Below, piece by piece: positions 47,285 through 64,000 of a stretch of DNA of 64,000 bases. The stretch lies in the NCBI GenBank assembly GCA_904063045.1, contig CAJFCJ010000001.1, forward strand, positions 1,674,001-1,738,000. The letters are read 5' to 3'. Below the pieces are notes generated by a model, which saw nothing but the letters and a program-made list of their open reading frames with translations, was not told where the DNA came from and did not search any database. The stretch comes from Dimorphilus gyrociliatus. Lineage: Eukaryota; Animalia; Annelida. How positions within the stretch are numbered: the first letter of the stretch is position 1; each line of letters begins with the position of its first letter. A program made the position numbers and the translations under genes.

Positions 47285-49466
47285 ATGAACGGACAGCAGA
47301 CTTTGAGAAAGATGGTGAGTTGGCCCCTTATTTCGATTTGTAATTTTGCAAATCGAAACCATCCTCGCTTTATTTTGGAATTTGTCAATAATTGCACATA
47401 CCAACAAACAAAAGGAAGATGTATAAATAGATTCAATTAGCATGTCTCTTAAGTAAACAGCATATAATCATTGCTTATTAAATGAGAAGTATTAAACTAA
47501 GGCTATAAACGAGGCTGAGGTGCTTTTAAAATCTAATGATGACACTTTTTCACGTAACGCTTGTAAACAAAACATTCTGTTAACTGACCCGGACGTTACT
47601 AAAAATAGCAATCATCAACAATAAAGTATTGTCCGAAAACGAGGGCATGCAATAAGGATTGTATTAACATTAAAGTTCTTTATATTATTTTTTTTTCAGC
47701 CATCGATTAACAGCCCGGAATCAGACACTGTTGAGGAAGGAGAATCGATGACGGTGTCAGGGCTAGCGAATGCATCAGTTAAGCCTACGGATAGTTCACC
47801 TCCTGTGAAGTGTGCACGCCTGTCGCAAAATGGTTCCACTTCAACCGAAGAATCCAAAGAATCAATGTGGCAAAAAACCGGTTTTGTCAATGGAAAATAT
47901 CTGAATCCACCGACGACATTGGCTAGACGAAATTTTGCAACAGTAGAACGTAATTGTTTACCTTCTGAAAAATATTTGGAGGCTAAAAAGAAACTAGATG
48001 CTATTATTTCATCTTCTGACTCTAGCAGCGTAACTACCGAGACTAAGGCTCGGTCGCTATGTGAAATTTATAGCAATTTAGAACTAGAAGAGAAGGCATT
48101 ATTTCTAAATACACTATCCACCGAATATGGTCTTAATCAAGATCAAGTTATCCATGCCGCCCAAGCGGTCTTAGCTTTAAGAGAAAAAGGTAGTGGTACA
48201 CTATTAAGAGCTGAAGAAAAATTAAGGTTAACTTTACAACCGCGATATCAGCATATTTTCGCCGTGGTTGGACGTCTGGAAAAAGGTGTTAAATTCCTGG
48301 TGGATATCAGAGCAGATCTCATGGATTTGATCCAGGCTCGTTCAGCTAGTTCAACTGACAGCGAAGATCAAACACACCTAAGAGTAATGAGTAATAACAT
48401 ACGTGAGTTACTCTCCTTATGGTTCTCAGTCGGTTTTCTTGATTTGGAGAGAATCACTTGGCAATCACCATGTGACATGTTGCAAAAAATATCCGAATAT
48501 GAAGCCGTCCACCCAATACGCAATTGGACAGACTTAAAAAGACGAGTTGGAAACTACAGACGCTGTTTTGTCTTTACACATGCTAGTATGCCTCGTGAGC
48601 CCGTCGTTGTCTTACACACTGCACTTACGTCTGAAATATCCTCCTCAATCCAATCAATTGTTCAGAGAAATGCTCGATTGAGTGGTGAACCAGAGCCGGT
48701 AGAGCTTAGCGAAAATACCCATTCCATTTCAACAGCTATTTTTTATTCTATCACCTCAACCCAAAAGGGGTTACAAGGTGTTGAACTTGGAAATTATTTG
48801 ATAAAAAAAGTAGTCAGGGAATTGCAAGCCGAATTTCCAAATATGAAAAATTTTTCAAGTTTATCTCCTATACCAGGTTTCAGGGATTGGTTGTTATCAG
48901 AAATTGATTCCTTTTCTAAAACTAAACAAAAGCCTGTGCTTCTTAAAAGGGAAGAGAATAAACTAAGTTCCCTTGATTCTAAAACAGAGCCAATTGTCAC
49001 ACTAAAGCATTCAATTCTTCAAATGTCAGACTCTGCAACTTGGTTCCAGAATTCACCAAATGTTGATGTAATAAGTGGTATTTTAATGAGATTGTGTGCA
49101 CGTTACTTGTATATTGAAAAGCGAAGAGGCCTTGCCCTGAACCCAGTTGGTCAGTAGTTTTATTACCTAGAGATTAAGTACTACAGAAATATTTAACATG
49201 TCATCTTTAAAATATCCTCTTTTTTATTCTAAACAGCAAACTTTCATCTGAGGAATGGAGCAGTTATGTGGCGAATTAATTGGGGAGCAGACCTTTCTGT
49301 TCGTGGAATAAAATCTTCTTGTTCACTGATGGTGAATTATCGTTACTTTTTAGAAGATACCGAAACGAATAGTAATAAATACATGGAAAGACATGAAATC
49401 GTTGCCTCTCCTATGGTCAAAGAATTGTTGCAATTAAACGAACTGAAGCAAGAACCAATTAGTTGA
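47285..49466 (+). CDS. MLYCD: Malonyl-CoA decarboxylase; exons 47285-47314, 47700-about 49149, 49237-49466 (may start further upstream)
   Basis: [72 protein letters not shown]|ANFHLRNGA. Confidence 0.95.
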
Positions 49467-53011: not shown

Positions 53012-54513
53012 TCAAAGCATGTAATTTTTAGCGACCATCTTTATAGGTCTTCTGCAGATTGGACACGGTTTTCCATTGTTACGCAATCTTTTGCCACATG
53101 GATAACAAGTTACTTGATGCGCACTTTTTCCATGAATAAGAACGGCATCTTTTGACTGTTCTTGGCAGATTGAGCAGAATTCCACTTCCAAGGATGAACC
53201 TATTCCCGAATCTTTTCTTAAATTGAACGGCTTTTGTGTTTTTGGTGAATTTGTGTTAGGGGTTTCTTCCTCTTCAGTTAATATAATCGTACTAGCATTC
53301 GAACTTTGATGTTTGAGAGGTGAAGCAATAAATTTGTTATCATTGCTTTCAATGTCATCTTCATCGCTATCAAATCGAGTAGAAATTGCCGAATTGAACT
53401 TGACAGGCTGTAAGCGAGATTTCTTTCTTCTTTTTCGCAGCACTTTCTTTTTCCTTCTAAGATCCCCGGCAGTACTACCATGATCAGTTTCTGAACGGCT
53501 AATATCTGGTCCGCAATATATGGAACCAAATTGTCGATGAAATGTCTCTCCACCAGATGATGAATCCTCTCTGTCACTATTGATTGATTCCTCGTCAGCA
53601 AAGAATTCATTGTCCGTTGTCAGTACTCCAACGACGTCTTCGACAGGTGATTGTGAGCCAATCGATAGCTTTGTGTTAGACTCATCCATTGATTCTGGTT
53701 CGTACTCTTCAAAATGTTCGTCTTCCGAAAGAAACCATAAATCATCGGAAGATGATGCAACTATTGCTGTTGTCTTGCTATGTATACTATTATCAGATTC
53801 TTCATCTTCTTCCATTGTTTCCTGTCGAAACTCCGATGTATCCTCAATATCAGAAAATTTTCGTTTTCGATTACAATTCATAGGCGGAGTTGCGAGAATT
53901 TTTGGCGTCGTTTTGGAAACGTGCTTTTGTAGTAATGTTCTATGAGAAAGAATTAGATCAATTATTTATTGTGGTTAAAAACCGTAAAGGGCAAACGCAA
54001 ATATTATAATGGAACTTACGGAAACTCATCAATGTACAATGCAGGGCGATTAGTTAACGTCATTAAATCGTTGTCGCAGTATACTAAGGATGGTTGATGT
54101 CTATCAAACAATTTCTTTTCCTTAATATAATCTCCCAGGTAGTTGATTATCTAATGGGAATAACAGACTTTGTTTATGCCATAAACAAGAGCAAATGTTT
54201 ACATCGCTAAGACAACTCCATCAATTATTCAAATAATGATTGCGAACCAAAGGAGTAAGACTCAGAAAAGAACATTTTGTAAACAATGTTAAAATTCTTT
54301 TACCTGGGAAAGTGTGAAGTAATCTTCACAAGCTCCAATCTTTCGTAAGATGGAAAGAAGACGATAGCTTGGTTCAAACTTTTCCATATTTTTCTTCTTC
54401 TAATTAGGACAATAAACGTTATAAATTGAGGAAAGAATATAGGAAAACATTACGCTCACCTCCTCCATATTTATTGTTCGACGTACACAGTCGAATTTCA
54501 AAGAAGCTTGCAT
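53012..54513 (-). CDS. MDM2: MDM2/MDM4-family E3 ligase; 4 coding exons (SWIB, acidic region, C2H2C4 RING)
   Basis: Spliced SWIB domain LLSILRKIGA..YFTLSQ|IINYLGDYIKEKKLFD...VYCDND, with intron positions matching my recollection of vertebrate MDM2. RING: CSIC...IHGKSAHQVTCYPC...CPICRRPI. Confidence 0.92.
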
Positions 54514-60254: not shown

Positions 60255-61346
60255 TTAAGATTGATCGCCAATAGTTTCTCCTTTACTCCTTTCTCTTTCG
60301 TAGCTTTTAATCATCTCTTGAAGAATTTTATTCTCTTCCGATAAATCATCGTTACTCTTTCGACTGATGTCTAATTCGTGAGATAATCCATTATTACGCT
60401 CTTTAAATACAGTTATTTCACGTCTGAGTTTGGATAGTTTTTTTTCTAAGCCTATATTAATCCCAGTTAGTTCGTATATATATAAATCTTTTTTCTCTCT
60501 AATTGATCTTTCTCTTTCTAATTCTCTTTCCATTTCGTTAGTTTTTTTTTTCAGCGTCAAATATTCCTCTGTTAAATCAATAGAGTTTTTATTTGATTCA
60601 TTAACTTTTTTTAGTAAACATGGCTGTAAAAAGAAAAACAAAACAATAAATTAAATATAGAGAAAGTGAAATTAGTAGTAAAATAAACCTCTTCTATATG
60701 ATGTTCTTTCATTTCTCTCTTTATTTCCTCAGCTTCCTTGGCTAATTCTCTCACTTTACTTTCGGATAGAATATTTTGAACCTATTGAACAGATTAGTAA
60801 ATTTATGTAATTTTCTTATACAGTTAAGAAATCTAATAAGATTTTACTTTTAAATTTTTATATTCGTTCTTCTGTCTACGAATTTGTTCATTTAAGAAAG
60901 ATATTTCGTTAATTGATGTGATTGATGTTGAAATTTGTCTGCTATGTTTACTTTCGTTTTGTTGTAATTTATCTATACGATCTTTAAGTTTCTCAAAATA
61001 AGATCTTAGTTGATCTTGATCAGTAAAAGCTGCAATATACAAAGTTACTAGTAGTTATTGATGTAAGAGAAAAACTATGATTGGTACTTACTCTCCGTCT
61101 TCTGATTAGGAATCGCAGAAGTTTTCTTATTATTTATGTTACTTAGATCCGTAAACTTGTATTAATTAAAATTTTAACAAAATATAAAGTAATTGAAAGT
61201 AAGATATTAAAATTTAGACTTACATTCATTTTTCTCTCGCAGATCGGTTTATTTTCTTTTTCGTCATTAATAGATTTTAATTCACAAATTTCAAAAGGCG
61301 ATCCTGATGAGCAAGTACCGTCATATTCTTGATTAAATGTTGCCAT
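60255..61346 (-). CDS. Coiled-coil protein of unknown family; about 5 exons
   Basis: Exons join in frame through GT-AG introns (for example GTAAGT at 61223); heptad-rich E/K sequence. Confidence 0.65.
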
Positions 61347-62228
61347 TACTATTAATAAATTAATATTTAAGAAAGTTTTATCAAGAGTCCGGCGATCTTA
61401 AACTTTTAAATATCTTTCGTAAATTTCAGTCAAGGAGCAACTAGTTTTATATAGCTATAGTGATCAGTTGGTTTATATAGTAAGCCAGAGTCGTCGTCCG
61501 CTAACTAGGTACAGCTAGGCTTTAATTGATCTAAATACAATTTGAACTTTATTAAACCCTATAGTCGTGCGTGTTTTCTAGTAAAAAAAAGTTACAAAAG
61601 TATTGGAAATTCTAGAATAAATGTTCACAATGAACTATTATCTTTTATAAAAGTCTGAAAATTATGTTTTTCTCTTCAAAACATTCTACTTTTAAGTAAA
61701 ATGAAAAACTTTTAAAGTAAATACTCGAGGCGAAAAGAAAAGTATAAATTAATAAAAAAAACTTCATTAAAAGTTCCATTTTAGTTAAATTTAACTATAA
61801 ATAACGTAAGAAATTGTAATCAGTTTATATCAAAAGTATTTTATATGAAATATAGTGAATTTTTTTCTATATTTCTTATATAAAGTAACTTTTTCGGAAA
61901 GATATAACTGTGTGGTATTTTCGGATAATTAATATCAAACTGAAAGCTATATAGTCAAACTTTACGGTTTAATTCAAGTTTCTCACTGATTTTTAGTAGG
62001 ATTAAATTGTATACCAGTTTACAATATTGCGAAGGACAAACGGAAACTCAAAATCTACAATCATAGGTTTTTCCTCTTAATTTAAAGTTTAACAGAGACA
62101 AATAAATATAACTTTAGTGATAAATTTTGATTTTATATCTATTTTTAACTTTTGTTTTAATATTTGTTAAAAACCCATAGTATGATCATTTGAATAAGGC
62201 AGAAAACTCAATTTTCGCTCACAGATCC

Positions 62229-62534
62229 ATGCCATTTTATCGAAGTCAAACGATTCGAAAATTACTTGATTCTACTCCTGGTCGAAATACTTTTGGTGTC
62301 TATCGATTTCTTCCTTTCTTCTTTATCTTAGGAGCTGCGTTGGAGTTTTCTATGATAAATTGGAGAGTGGGAGACGTAAATTTTTGTAAGTCATTAACCT
62401 TTGAGAACGTTCTCTTACATTATATTATTGTTACTTATGAAAATCATAACGTTTCTTCAGATAGCGTATATAAGAAGAGAAAAGTTCACGAACTAGCTTT
62501 AAAGCAACTAAAAGAAGAAGGGAAAATTGAGTAA
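62229..62534 (+). CDS. UQCC5: Complex III assembly factor UQCC5 (SMIM4/Sloth1); exons 62229-62385 and 62461-62534
   Basis: IRKLLDSTPGRNTFGVYRFLPFFFILGAALEFSMINWRVGDVNF|YSVYKKR matches SMIM4. Confidence 0.93.
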   Translation: MPFYRSQTIRKLLDSTPGRNTFGVYRFLPFFFILGAALEFSMINWRVGDVNFCKSLTFENVLLHYIIVTYENHNVSSDSVYKKRKVHELALKQLKEEGKIE

Positions 62535-62535
62535 A

Positions 62536-62706
62536 ATGCCGGCTGGAGTCCGAATGAGTGTTTATGTAAAATTTCTTTGCGCCTCCTTATTAAGTATGTT
62601 TGCTGGATCTCAGGCTGTTCATGTTCTATACAAACCATTAGATAATATAAATCAATTGGTTGAAGATGAGAAACTAAATATACTAAAAGGTATAGACGAA
62701 AAATAG
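62536..62706 (+). CDS. UQCC6: Complex III assembly factor UQCC6 (BRAWNIN/C12orf73/Sloth2), 56 aa; not in the ORF track
   Basis: MPAGVRMSVYVKFLCASLLSMFAGSQAVHVLYKPLDNINQLVEDEKLNILKGIDEK*, with the MPAGV...AGxxxVHxxYxP signature. Confidence 0.92.
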   Translation: MPAGVRMSVYVKFLCASLLSMFAGSQAVHVLYKPLDNINQLVEDEKLNILKGIDEK

Positions 62707-62916
62707 AAAATATAAATTGAGAAAACTTCGAATTTGAATTCATTAGAATGTATTTGATAATTAAATATTTTGAATTGTTTCTACTGATTAAATAGAATAT
62801 CTCGGAATTATTTAAATAATATACTAAAAATAGTCCATAACCCACCGTAAATAATCAACTTGTATAGTTGCAATTTAATTATAAGTTCTTAATAGTTAGT
62901 GTTTTTCTTGACAATA

Positions 62917-64000
62917 TCAACGAAATTGTGATGTACTTATTCTTAAGCCAATAGTGTCTTTGCCTATTTCAGTTGCCTGAAAGAAAAAGTACTGTTTGAA
63001 AAATATGCTTTTTTTCCTAGACTAAATGTACCTTCGTTATTCTACAAACTTGACCCTTAAACTCTGGTAGATAACATGCACCACTGAGTGGACATTTAAC
63101 AACTGGTTTTCCCTTATAGATGGGAGTAAAGCTAGCTCCACAAATATCAAAAGGATTATGTTCGTCGTACTTCAAATCCAAATTATCCGATGGATTCTTT
63201 TCACATACCATCATAATTTTCCTTGCTTGAACAGCAACTTCTTGTTTTGGCCCAAGTTCAAGTAATCTATTCGATTTAAAAGCTCCTTAAATTTATGAAA
63301 GAAATTCGAATTGTTACAAACCTCCTTGCAAAACTTGCTGCTGTCTTCAGGTTTTTCAATTTAAATGACAAATTTAATGCCGTTCTAAGAGTTAGAATTA
63401 AATGAATAGGTTGCAATTTACAATGAGTAAAATACGCAGCCATTTCACAATTTCTCTTCTGATCTTCAACACTTGTCTTCGGTAAATCTTTCCTTGCTTG
63501 CTCCATAGTTAAACCAATTATATATTCCCTACAAATTTCGATTAATTGTTGGGCTTCAGCGATTTCCTGTTTGTTTTCCACTACTAGTAGAGGAACACTG
63601 AGGAGAATGGACCTAAATTTCTCAATTGCATCAGCGAACTTGCCACTTGTTGTCAATTGATAAGCTGCTTGAAGCCTGTGAATAAGCTCTGCAAGTCTTA
63701 ACCCAGTTGCTGGTAGACCTTGCTTTAAACCTGCTTCTTTCCAGTTCCTATGGGGAAATCCGAAGAGTGGTTCCAGAGAAGGTGTTGCCTGGAAACACGT
63801 CCTAGACCTTGCATAAGTGTAAAGGAATAATTTTTTGTACTCAGTGAAGTCGACAACACCTATTTGGTCATGTAGTAATCTAGCGGCTGTTTCAAAAGAA
63901 CCGGCCAAAATGTGATCCACAGGTAATTGGGAATTATTGCACCAAATCTGGTTCTGGCTGACACCTTTAGTTGGAGGGACAAAGTAAGCGTTCTGCCCAG
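62917..64000 (-). CDS. COPA: Coatomer subunit alpha, 3' part
   Basis: [51 protein letters not shown], last exon [19 protein letters not shown]. Confidence 0.97.

Follow-up and report, generated by a model that had tools for sequence, protein, structure and literature searches.

The UQCC5–UQCC6 gene pair of Dimorphilus gyrociliatus: an annelid counterpart of Drosophila sloth1–sloth2 with a one-nucleotide spacer

Structure of the locus

The window (the whole stretch of Dimorphilus gyrociliatus DNA that was analysed, 64,000 nucleotides in length) contains two short open reading frames, ORF1 and ORF2, that follow each other on the forward strand. The features of the locus are listed below in window coordinates, together with the joints and ends of two RNA contigs of the same species, X1 and X3, and the points at which a contig of a relative, L001, was used for comparison.

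62023–62066, + strand: 5′ non-coding exon, of which the 3′ part is seen; ATG-free; start of RNA contig X1
62067–62224, + strand: 5′UTR intron, 158 nt, GT..AG; X1 joint 62064/66 to 62223/25
62225–62385, + strand: exon 2, with a 4-nt leader (ATCC) followed by 52 codons plus 1 nt of ORF1
62229–62385, + strand: exon part of ORF1 with the start codon (ATG 62229–62231), read from the sequence and from RNA contig X1
62386–62460, + strand: ORF1 intron, 75 nt, phase 1, after ..VNF; X1 joint 62385 to 62461
62461–62534, + strand: second part of ORF1 (Y-SVYKKRKVHELALKQLKEEGKIE); TAA stop 62532–62534
62535, + strand: spacer, a single A between the ORF1 TAA and the ORF2 ATG
62536–62706, + strand: ORF2, 56 aa; ATG 62536–62538, TAG 62704–62706; intronless; +1 frame relative to ORF1
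62707–62870, + strand: probable 3′UTR; ATTAAA at 62760–62765 and 62787–62792; X3 continuous over 62419–62975
62917–62975, − strand: last coding exon of COPA (coatomer alpha); TGA stop 62917–62919, by comparison with L001

The spacing of 1 nt (TAA-A-ATG) and the coordinates given in the initial annotation are correct to the base. Spliced ORF1 has 76 codons by exon arithmetic. The donor of its intron is GTAAGT at 62386 and the TTCTTCAG acceptor ends at 62460; the splicing claimed for ORF1 was borne out by X1, in which a GT..AG joint from 62385 to 62461 skips 75 nt. The length of this intron is divisible by 3 and it holds no in-frame stop; the unspliced frame stays open, and a retained intron would add 25 aa after the membrane segment, with ORF2 unaffected. 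The in-frame length is probably due to chance, since the counterpart in Dendroctonus measures 62 nt. An Rfam scan of the 64-kb window matched no family.

Identification of the encoded proteins

ORF1 had been named UQCC5 (SMIM4) and ORF2 UQCC6 (BRAWNIN), and both names were supported by Pfam far beyond chance. Exon 1 of ORF1 scores 87 bits with PF15114 (UPF0640) over profile positions 2–49 of 67 (E = 8e-25), and ORF2 scores 60.6 bits with PF14990 (DUF4516) over positions 1–45 of 46 (E = 1e-16); the gathering cut-off is 27 bits for both families. PF15114/UPF0640 is SMIM4/UQCC5, the sloth1 product of the fly, and PF14990/DUF4516 is BRAWNIN/UQCC6, the product of fly sloth2 (Bosch et al., 2022, eLife 11:e82709, PMC9681215). 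The conserved segment YRFLPFFFILGAALEFSMINW of ORF1 lies within the exon 62225–62385. The length of 76 codons suits a family of proteins of about 70–80 aa with the invariant core YRFLP.FF.LGA.LEFSMINW, and the window sequence agrees with alignment A2 in 19 of 19 invariant columns. ORF2 has the N-terminal MPAGV and the ..SMFAGSQ.VH..Y.PL core of its family, and all of the invariant columns of alignment A1 (M1, P2, G4, M21, A23, G24, V28, Y32, P34 and L35) are found in it. On their common strand the UQCC5 ORF immediately precedes the UQCC6 ORF.

A word search with exon 1 of ORF1 returned 66 relatives, mostly arthropod SMIM4, and a word search with ORF2 returned three relatives only, too small a number for a survey, so that ORF1 served as the anchor. 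The best match to ORF1, P0004, sits on L001. This Logan RNA contig, 1302 nt long and from a relative, carries a 54-nt ATG-free leader, a spliced 76-aa ORF1, TAA-ac-ATG and a 55-aa ORF2. Exon 1 of ORF1 is 75% identical to L001 and to insect SMIM4, the ORF1 tail (62461–62534) is 78% identical to that of L001, and ORF2 is 66% identical to P0001/L001.

The gene structure is likewise shared. A phase-1 intron after ..NF was also found in the genomic loci L002–L007, L011, L024, L031, L035 and L038–L040, and the position of the ORF1 intron is shared with at least 15 genomic loci; the supplementary sequences for fly and lamprey have the same ..NF/Y phase-1 intron (Bosch et al., 2022, PMC9681215). In L005, L006, L031, L039 and L040, a set that includes a tick, a bivalve and several environmental contigs, a GT donor interrupts ORF2 immediately behind the conserved Y.PL(E/A), as it does in the lamprey sequence of PMC9681215. 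The intronless ORF2 of the Dimorphilus lineage probably reflects the loss of an old intron, as in insects.

RNA evidence and transcript structure

The own-species RNA comes from two runs and consists of two contigs that overlap, X1 reaching to 62494 and X3 starting from 62419. X1 (239 nt) is composed of 62023–62066, 62225–62385 and 62461–62494, with both introns gone, and it places ATG1 only 4 nt past the 5′UTR acceptor (mature context ..CATAG/ATCC AUG C). X3 (7781 nt) is unbroken over 62419–62975 and then runs on into the convergent COPA gene; it covers the last 42 nt of the ORF1 intron, exon 2 of ORF1, the spacer, ORF2 and the 3′ region. The run of X3 was taken to be a transcriptome because the introns of the neighbouring genes are absent from it. 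These RNA contigs are strandless, their ends are not transcript ends and holes in them prove nothing; X3 merges two convergent transcripts.

None of the own-species X1/X3 contigs spans both ORFs. As exon 1 and ORF2 do not occur together on any one of these contigs, a single mRNA for both ORFs in D. gyrociliatus is graded as likely. The initial annotation had stated that one mRNA must encode both, there being no room for a promoter or a poly(A) site between them; this is probably right, with the necessity overstated, as the argument is one from space. The single-mRNA reading leans mainly on relatives, the own X3 contig stopping inside the intron.

The main rival remains an internal start site for ORF2. 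It supposes two overlapping transcription units, with the start site of ORF2 in ORF1 or in the 75-nt intron and with UQCC6 made mostly from a monocistronic mRNA. In its favour, X3 ends within the intron at 62419, with 42 nt of intron sequence still attached to exon 2, and no X3 contig lies on exon 1. However, a contig end differs from a transcript end, the holes are uninformative and the intron fragment is compatible with unspliced pre-mRNA; the piece could be some unspliced RNA, DNA carry-over or the product of an internal start. The Drosophila gene has one start-site cluster and a full-length cDNA (Bosch et al., 2022, PMC9681215), which also argues against this arrangement, and we regard it as quite improbable.

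An AG at 62530–62531, located 4 nt before ATG2, would be the acceptor in a spliced-leader operon, where a leader added at this AG would yield a capped monocistronic ORF2 mRNA. The sequence ahead of the AG is nevertheless purine-rich (..AAGAAGGGAAAATTGAG), and a trans-splice acceptor with a pyrimidine tract before ORF2 was not encountered at the locus. The X1/X3 contigs have no loose ends or foreign 5′ sequence, the Dimorphilus genome paper found no spliced leaders or operons (PMC7854359), and fly and beetle share the tight layout. Taken with these points, a spliced-leader origin of the ORF2 mRNA is extremely improbable.

Occurrence of the pair and length of the spacer

In the annotated genomes of the following species, ORF1 is followed by ORF2 on the same strand in every case.

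Dendroctonus ponderosae, beetle: spacer 8 nt
Orchesella cincta, springtail: spacer 67 nt
Solemya velum, bivalve: spacer 111 nt
Ixodes hexagonus, tick: spacer 615 nt
Petrolisthes cinctipes, crab: spacer 768 nt

JGI metagenome and metatranscriptome contigs were scanned with the ORF1 alignment A2 as query, which gave 35 loci. A DUF4516 ORF follows ORF1 in nearly all of the environmental loci that have enough downstream sequence. The clear exception is L010, a 1446-nt RNA contig with a complete 74-aa UQCC5-like ORF, in which no downstream DUF4516 ORF was found even at HMM E ≤ 1; it is possible that the pair is unlinked or that ORF2 was lost in this lineage. L010 also speaks for an internal start site, as an ORF1 without a detectable ORF2 means that linkage does not hold in every organism. 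Against an internal start, both ORFs occur together on L001 and on 16 other spliced RNA contigs.

The spacer-length survey proposed in the initial annotation was run on 30 non-redundant loci, the window counted, and gave lengths of 1–768 nt; L030 is extra (52 nt). The shorter half comprises spacers of 1, 1, 1, 2, 2, 2, 4, 5, 8, 9, 11, 15, 16, 18 and 18 nt, and the longer half spacers of 23, 40, 41, 51, 55, 64, 67, 68, 90, 111, 133, 202, 615, 640 and 768 nt. Among the 16 non-redundant spliced environmental RNA contigs on which both ORFs are present, the median length of the spacer is 15.5 nt and the longest spacer 68 nt. Spacers of 1–2 nt are present in six of the 30 non-redundant loci, and two loci besides the window have a 1-nt spacer (L011, TAA-g-ATG; L037, TGA-a-ATG). 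Overlapping ORFs or overlapping stop and start codons were found at none of the 30 surveyed loci, and the frame relation of ORF1 and ORF2 varies across them. Since the spacers extend from 1 to 768 nt with zero overlaps and a variable frame, the pair does not require an intercistronic element. In this compact genome the 1-nt spacer falls at the lower limit of a continuous range and is not a separate mechanism.

A fusion of the two ORFs by readthrough or frameshifting was ruled out, as spacer length modulo 3 varies among the orthologues.

Start-codon contexts and translation of the two ORFs

ATG1 has the context AGATCC/ATGC (T at −3, C at +4) and ATG2 the context AGTAAA/ATGC (A at −3, C at +4). 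The sole exonic ATG between them is the in-frame Met42 codon of SMINW, with T at −3 and A at +4; the exon junction ...TTTTT/ATAGC... makes no ATG. The start contexts and the single internal in-frame AUG are therefore as the initial annotation had read them from the sequence. There are no out-of-frame ATGs in ORF1 of the window and three in ORF2, and the part of the leader that is seen (62023–62066 plus ATCC) is ATG-free. The locus thus combines a weak ATG1, a good ATG2 and few AUGs between the two. The context of ATG1 is kept in L001 (AGATTC/ATGC).

This signature of leaky scanning, on which the initial annotation had relied, holds at the window locus but is not general among the orthologues. 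A purine is present at −3 in 20 of 27 ATG1 sites versus 27 of 31 ATG2 sites (Fisher p = 0.32), pyrimidines being found at −3 of ATG1 in 7/27 loci and of ATG2 in 4/31, and synonymous shuffles of 17 loci gave 7.0 expected out-of-frame ATGs in ORF1, with 8 observed. As far as it can be read from these sequences, the weak-first pattern is lineage-specific, being seen in the window, L001, L011, Dendroctonus and the fly. At the tight-spacer loci there are ∼2.0 ATGs per 100 codons in ORF1 and ∼3.9 in ORF2. Selected depletion of AUGs from ORF1 was considered and dropped, as the synonymous shuffles gave no excess depletion; the scarcity of AUGs in ORF1 is attributed to protein sequence and codon usage.

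A spacer of 1 or 2 nt brings one of the purines of the stop codon to −3 of AUG2, whichever of the three stops is used, and the −3 purine of ATG2 is stop-derived in 6/6 loci with spacers of this length; a 0-nt spacer would put U at −3.

Upstream ATGs were noted in other loci, including L013, L017 and L027. A mini-uORF, ATG-AAA-TGA, whose stop overlaps the start of ORF1 (..ATGAAATGA..) is present about 5 nt before the ORF1 start in environmental RNA contigs (L012, L014, L019, L021 and L023). Other environmental RNA contigs have an out-of-frame ATG 4–5 nt upstream of ATG1. Almost all leaders have one or two upstream ATGs, L001 and the seen part of the window leader being without them. Where a purine stands at −3 of ATG1, such ATGs may be another means of lowering initiation at ORF1.

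In our judgement the locus is probably an orthologue of sloth1–sloth2 that is transcribed as one three-exon mRNA and yields both proteins by leaky scanning. The mRNA would consist of a non-coding exon ending at 62066, the exon 62225–62385 and a third exon from 62461 onward with the ORF1 tail, the single A, ORF2 and the 3′UTR. Scanning ribosomes would pass through an ATG-free leader and come first to AUG1, whose context is poor (U at −3, C at +4); some would start there and make UQCC5. The remaining ribosomes would pass the equally poor AUG of Met42 and start at AUG2, whose −3 purine comes from the ORF1 stop codon, to make UQCC6. A single promoter would in this way provide both partners at a fixed ratio. 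For D. gyrociliatus leaky scanning is a proposal; its experimental test, by Bosch et al., was made in Drosophila only. The fly reporters fit leaky scanning, a weaker sloth1 AUG giving more downstream translation and an optimal Kozak sequence giving less (Bosch et al., 2022, PMC9681215).

The adjacency of stop and start codons also suits termination–reinitiation, in which ribosomes remain on the mRNA after the UAA and restart 1 nt further on, with a coupling of ∼1:1. This process, of the kind seen in bacterial translational coupling or viral stop–start cassettes, may act alongside leaky scanning. The gap between stop and start is 1 nt in the window and 1–2 nt at five other loci. ORF1 has 76 codons, and after ORFs as long as this reinitiation is generally inefficient unless a dedicated RNA element assists. 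The last 40 nt of ORF1 differ synonymously between the window and L001, so that no conserved upstream RNA motif is visible there. Orthologous RNA contigs, moreover, have spacers of up to 68 nt with variable frames and no stop–start overlap. The Drosophila data bear on reinitiation in both directions: the ratio of Sloth1 to Sloth2, two peptides that interact, is important, in keeping with coupling, but a stronger sloth1 AUG cut downstream translation, the opposite of what coupling predicts (Bosch et al., 2022, PMC9681215). Reinitiation as the main source of UQCC6 is on balance unlikely.

It is also conceivable, albeit doubtful, that spacers of 1–2 nt are not just an outcome of genome compaction but represent a functional optimum at which leaky scanning and coupled reinitiation jointly fix the UQCC5:UQCC6 ratio. 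If so, the terminating ribosome would sit directly on AUG2, and the arrangement, having arisen repeatedly, would be for a two-subunit assembly factor what translational coupling is in bacteria.

Comparison with known gene pairs

In Drosophila, sloth1 and sloth2 are carried on one transcript, as established by a cDNA clone and RT-PCR, and are separated by a spacer of 5 nt, GCAAA (Bosch et al., 2022, PMC9681215). The comparison with sloth1–sloth2 (CG32736–CG42308) drawn in the initial annotation is apt, as the two loci are alike in families, order, strand and the ..NF/Y phase-1 intron. The spacer measures a few bases in both (1 nt in the window), in both the −3 position is a pyrimidine for ATG1 and an A for ATG2, and the lone internal in-frame AUG of ORF1, the SMINW methionine, is common to both. 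The window locus differs in that the stop codon itself forms the Kozak −3/−2 positions of ATG2, in that an extra 5′UTR intron ends 4 nt before ATG1, and in its annelid host; the window pair is known from sequence and RNA contigs, whereas the fly pair is known from translation reporters.

A similar bicistronic architecture was described for a choanoflagellate, a sea squirt and a lamprey, with the linkage taken as ancestral and the unlinked genes of jawed vertebrates treated as the exception (Bosch et al., 2022, PMC9681215). In Salpingoeca urceolata, Ciona and Petromyzon ORF1 precedes ORF2 on the same strand or transcript, as here, but the spacers are roughly 80 to several hundred nt compared with 1 nt. 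The human genes UQCC5 (SMIM4, chromosome 3) and UQCC6 (BRAWNIN/C12orf73, chromosome 12) belong to the same Pfam families as the window pair and, unlike it, are unlinked, separate monocistronic genes. Human cDNAs rescue fly sloth mutants (Bosch et al., 2022, PMC9681215). By homology to human UQCC5 and UQCC6, which are complex III assembly factors, the two products would be single-pass inner-membrane microproteins acting together in complex III assembly. The tarsal-less/pri and Sarcolamban genes, cited in PMC9681215, resemble the window locus in that one mRNA encodes several related microproteins; they involve other families, and have repeated near-identical ORFs rather than a diverged interacting pair.

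The initial annotation had presented the locus as extending an operon-like arrangement to another lineage. It is a new lineage example, but its novelty was overstated, as the linkage is already described in PMC9681215, and a literature search for further reports of the linked pair returned none that alters the ancestral-layout view. The window pair is a further instance, from an annelid, of a known ancestral layout. With the loci above, spiralian examples (Dimorphilus and the bivalve Solemya) and several arthropods are added to the known pair, and its spacer lengths are surveyed for the first time; the understanding of the system is unchanged.

Annotation status and neighbouring genes

Exact matches to ORF2 and to the unspliced reading of ORF1 are absent from a collection of 15 billion proteins, and none of the 66 relatives is a 100% match to ORF1 exon 1. 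Judged by these queries (ORF2, the ORF1 exons and the unspliced frame), both microproteins appear to have been left out of the public gene set. The collection that lacks ORF2 does hold the malonyl-CoA decarboxylase of Dimorphilus (P0070), a protein of the same genome, which agrees with the earlier expectation that ORF2 would be overlooked by annotation. Analyses of gene loss among complex III assembly factors would wrongly score both proteins as missing from this species; both are essential in the fly.

Downstream, the pair and COPA are convergent. COPA was identified by Pfam COPI_C in the window and in L001, and its minus-strand RNA joints are at 62976–63030 and 63267–63321. The stops of the two genes are ∼210–216 nt apart in the window and in L001 (456–674), the convergent COPA tail being found ∼216 nt beyond ORF2 of L001, with the synteny of the window. 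The fusion of both transcripts in unstranded RNA contigs suggests 3′UTRs that abut or overlap and a conserved micro-synteny.

Upstream, a divergent gene lies on the minus strand at 61224–61533, with the end of its first exon at ∼61533, an ATG at 61346 and a coiled-coil-like product that has no Pfam match. Some 490 nt (gap 61534–62022) separate this end from the point at which the 5′ exon of the pair is first seen, and a bidirectional promoter region may serve both genes.

For the ORF of 289 aa at 53015–53881, a search for an exact match gave no record. The malonyl-CoA decarboxylase gene is nearly complete in a single long exon (47748–49157), to which P0070 (486 aa) is 100% identical. For its ORF (47748–49154) the best named matches are from molluscs, a brachiopod and annelids at ∼52%; a 90%-identical relative is found in Logan assemblies only, which points to a sister species that is sequenced and unannotated. 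Introns in this region measure 55–158 nt, which fits the median intron length of 66 bp reported for D. gyrociliatus (PMC7854359).
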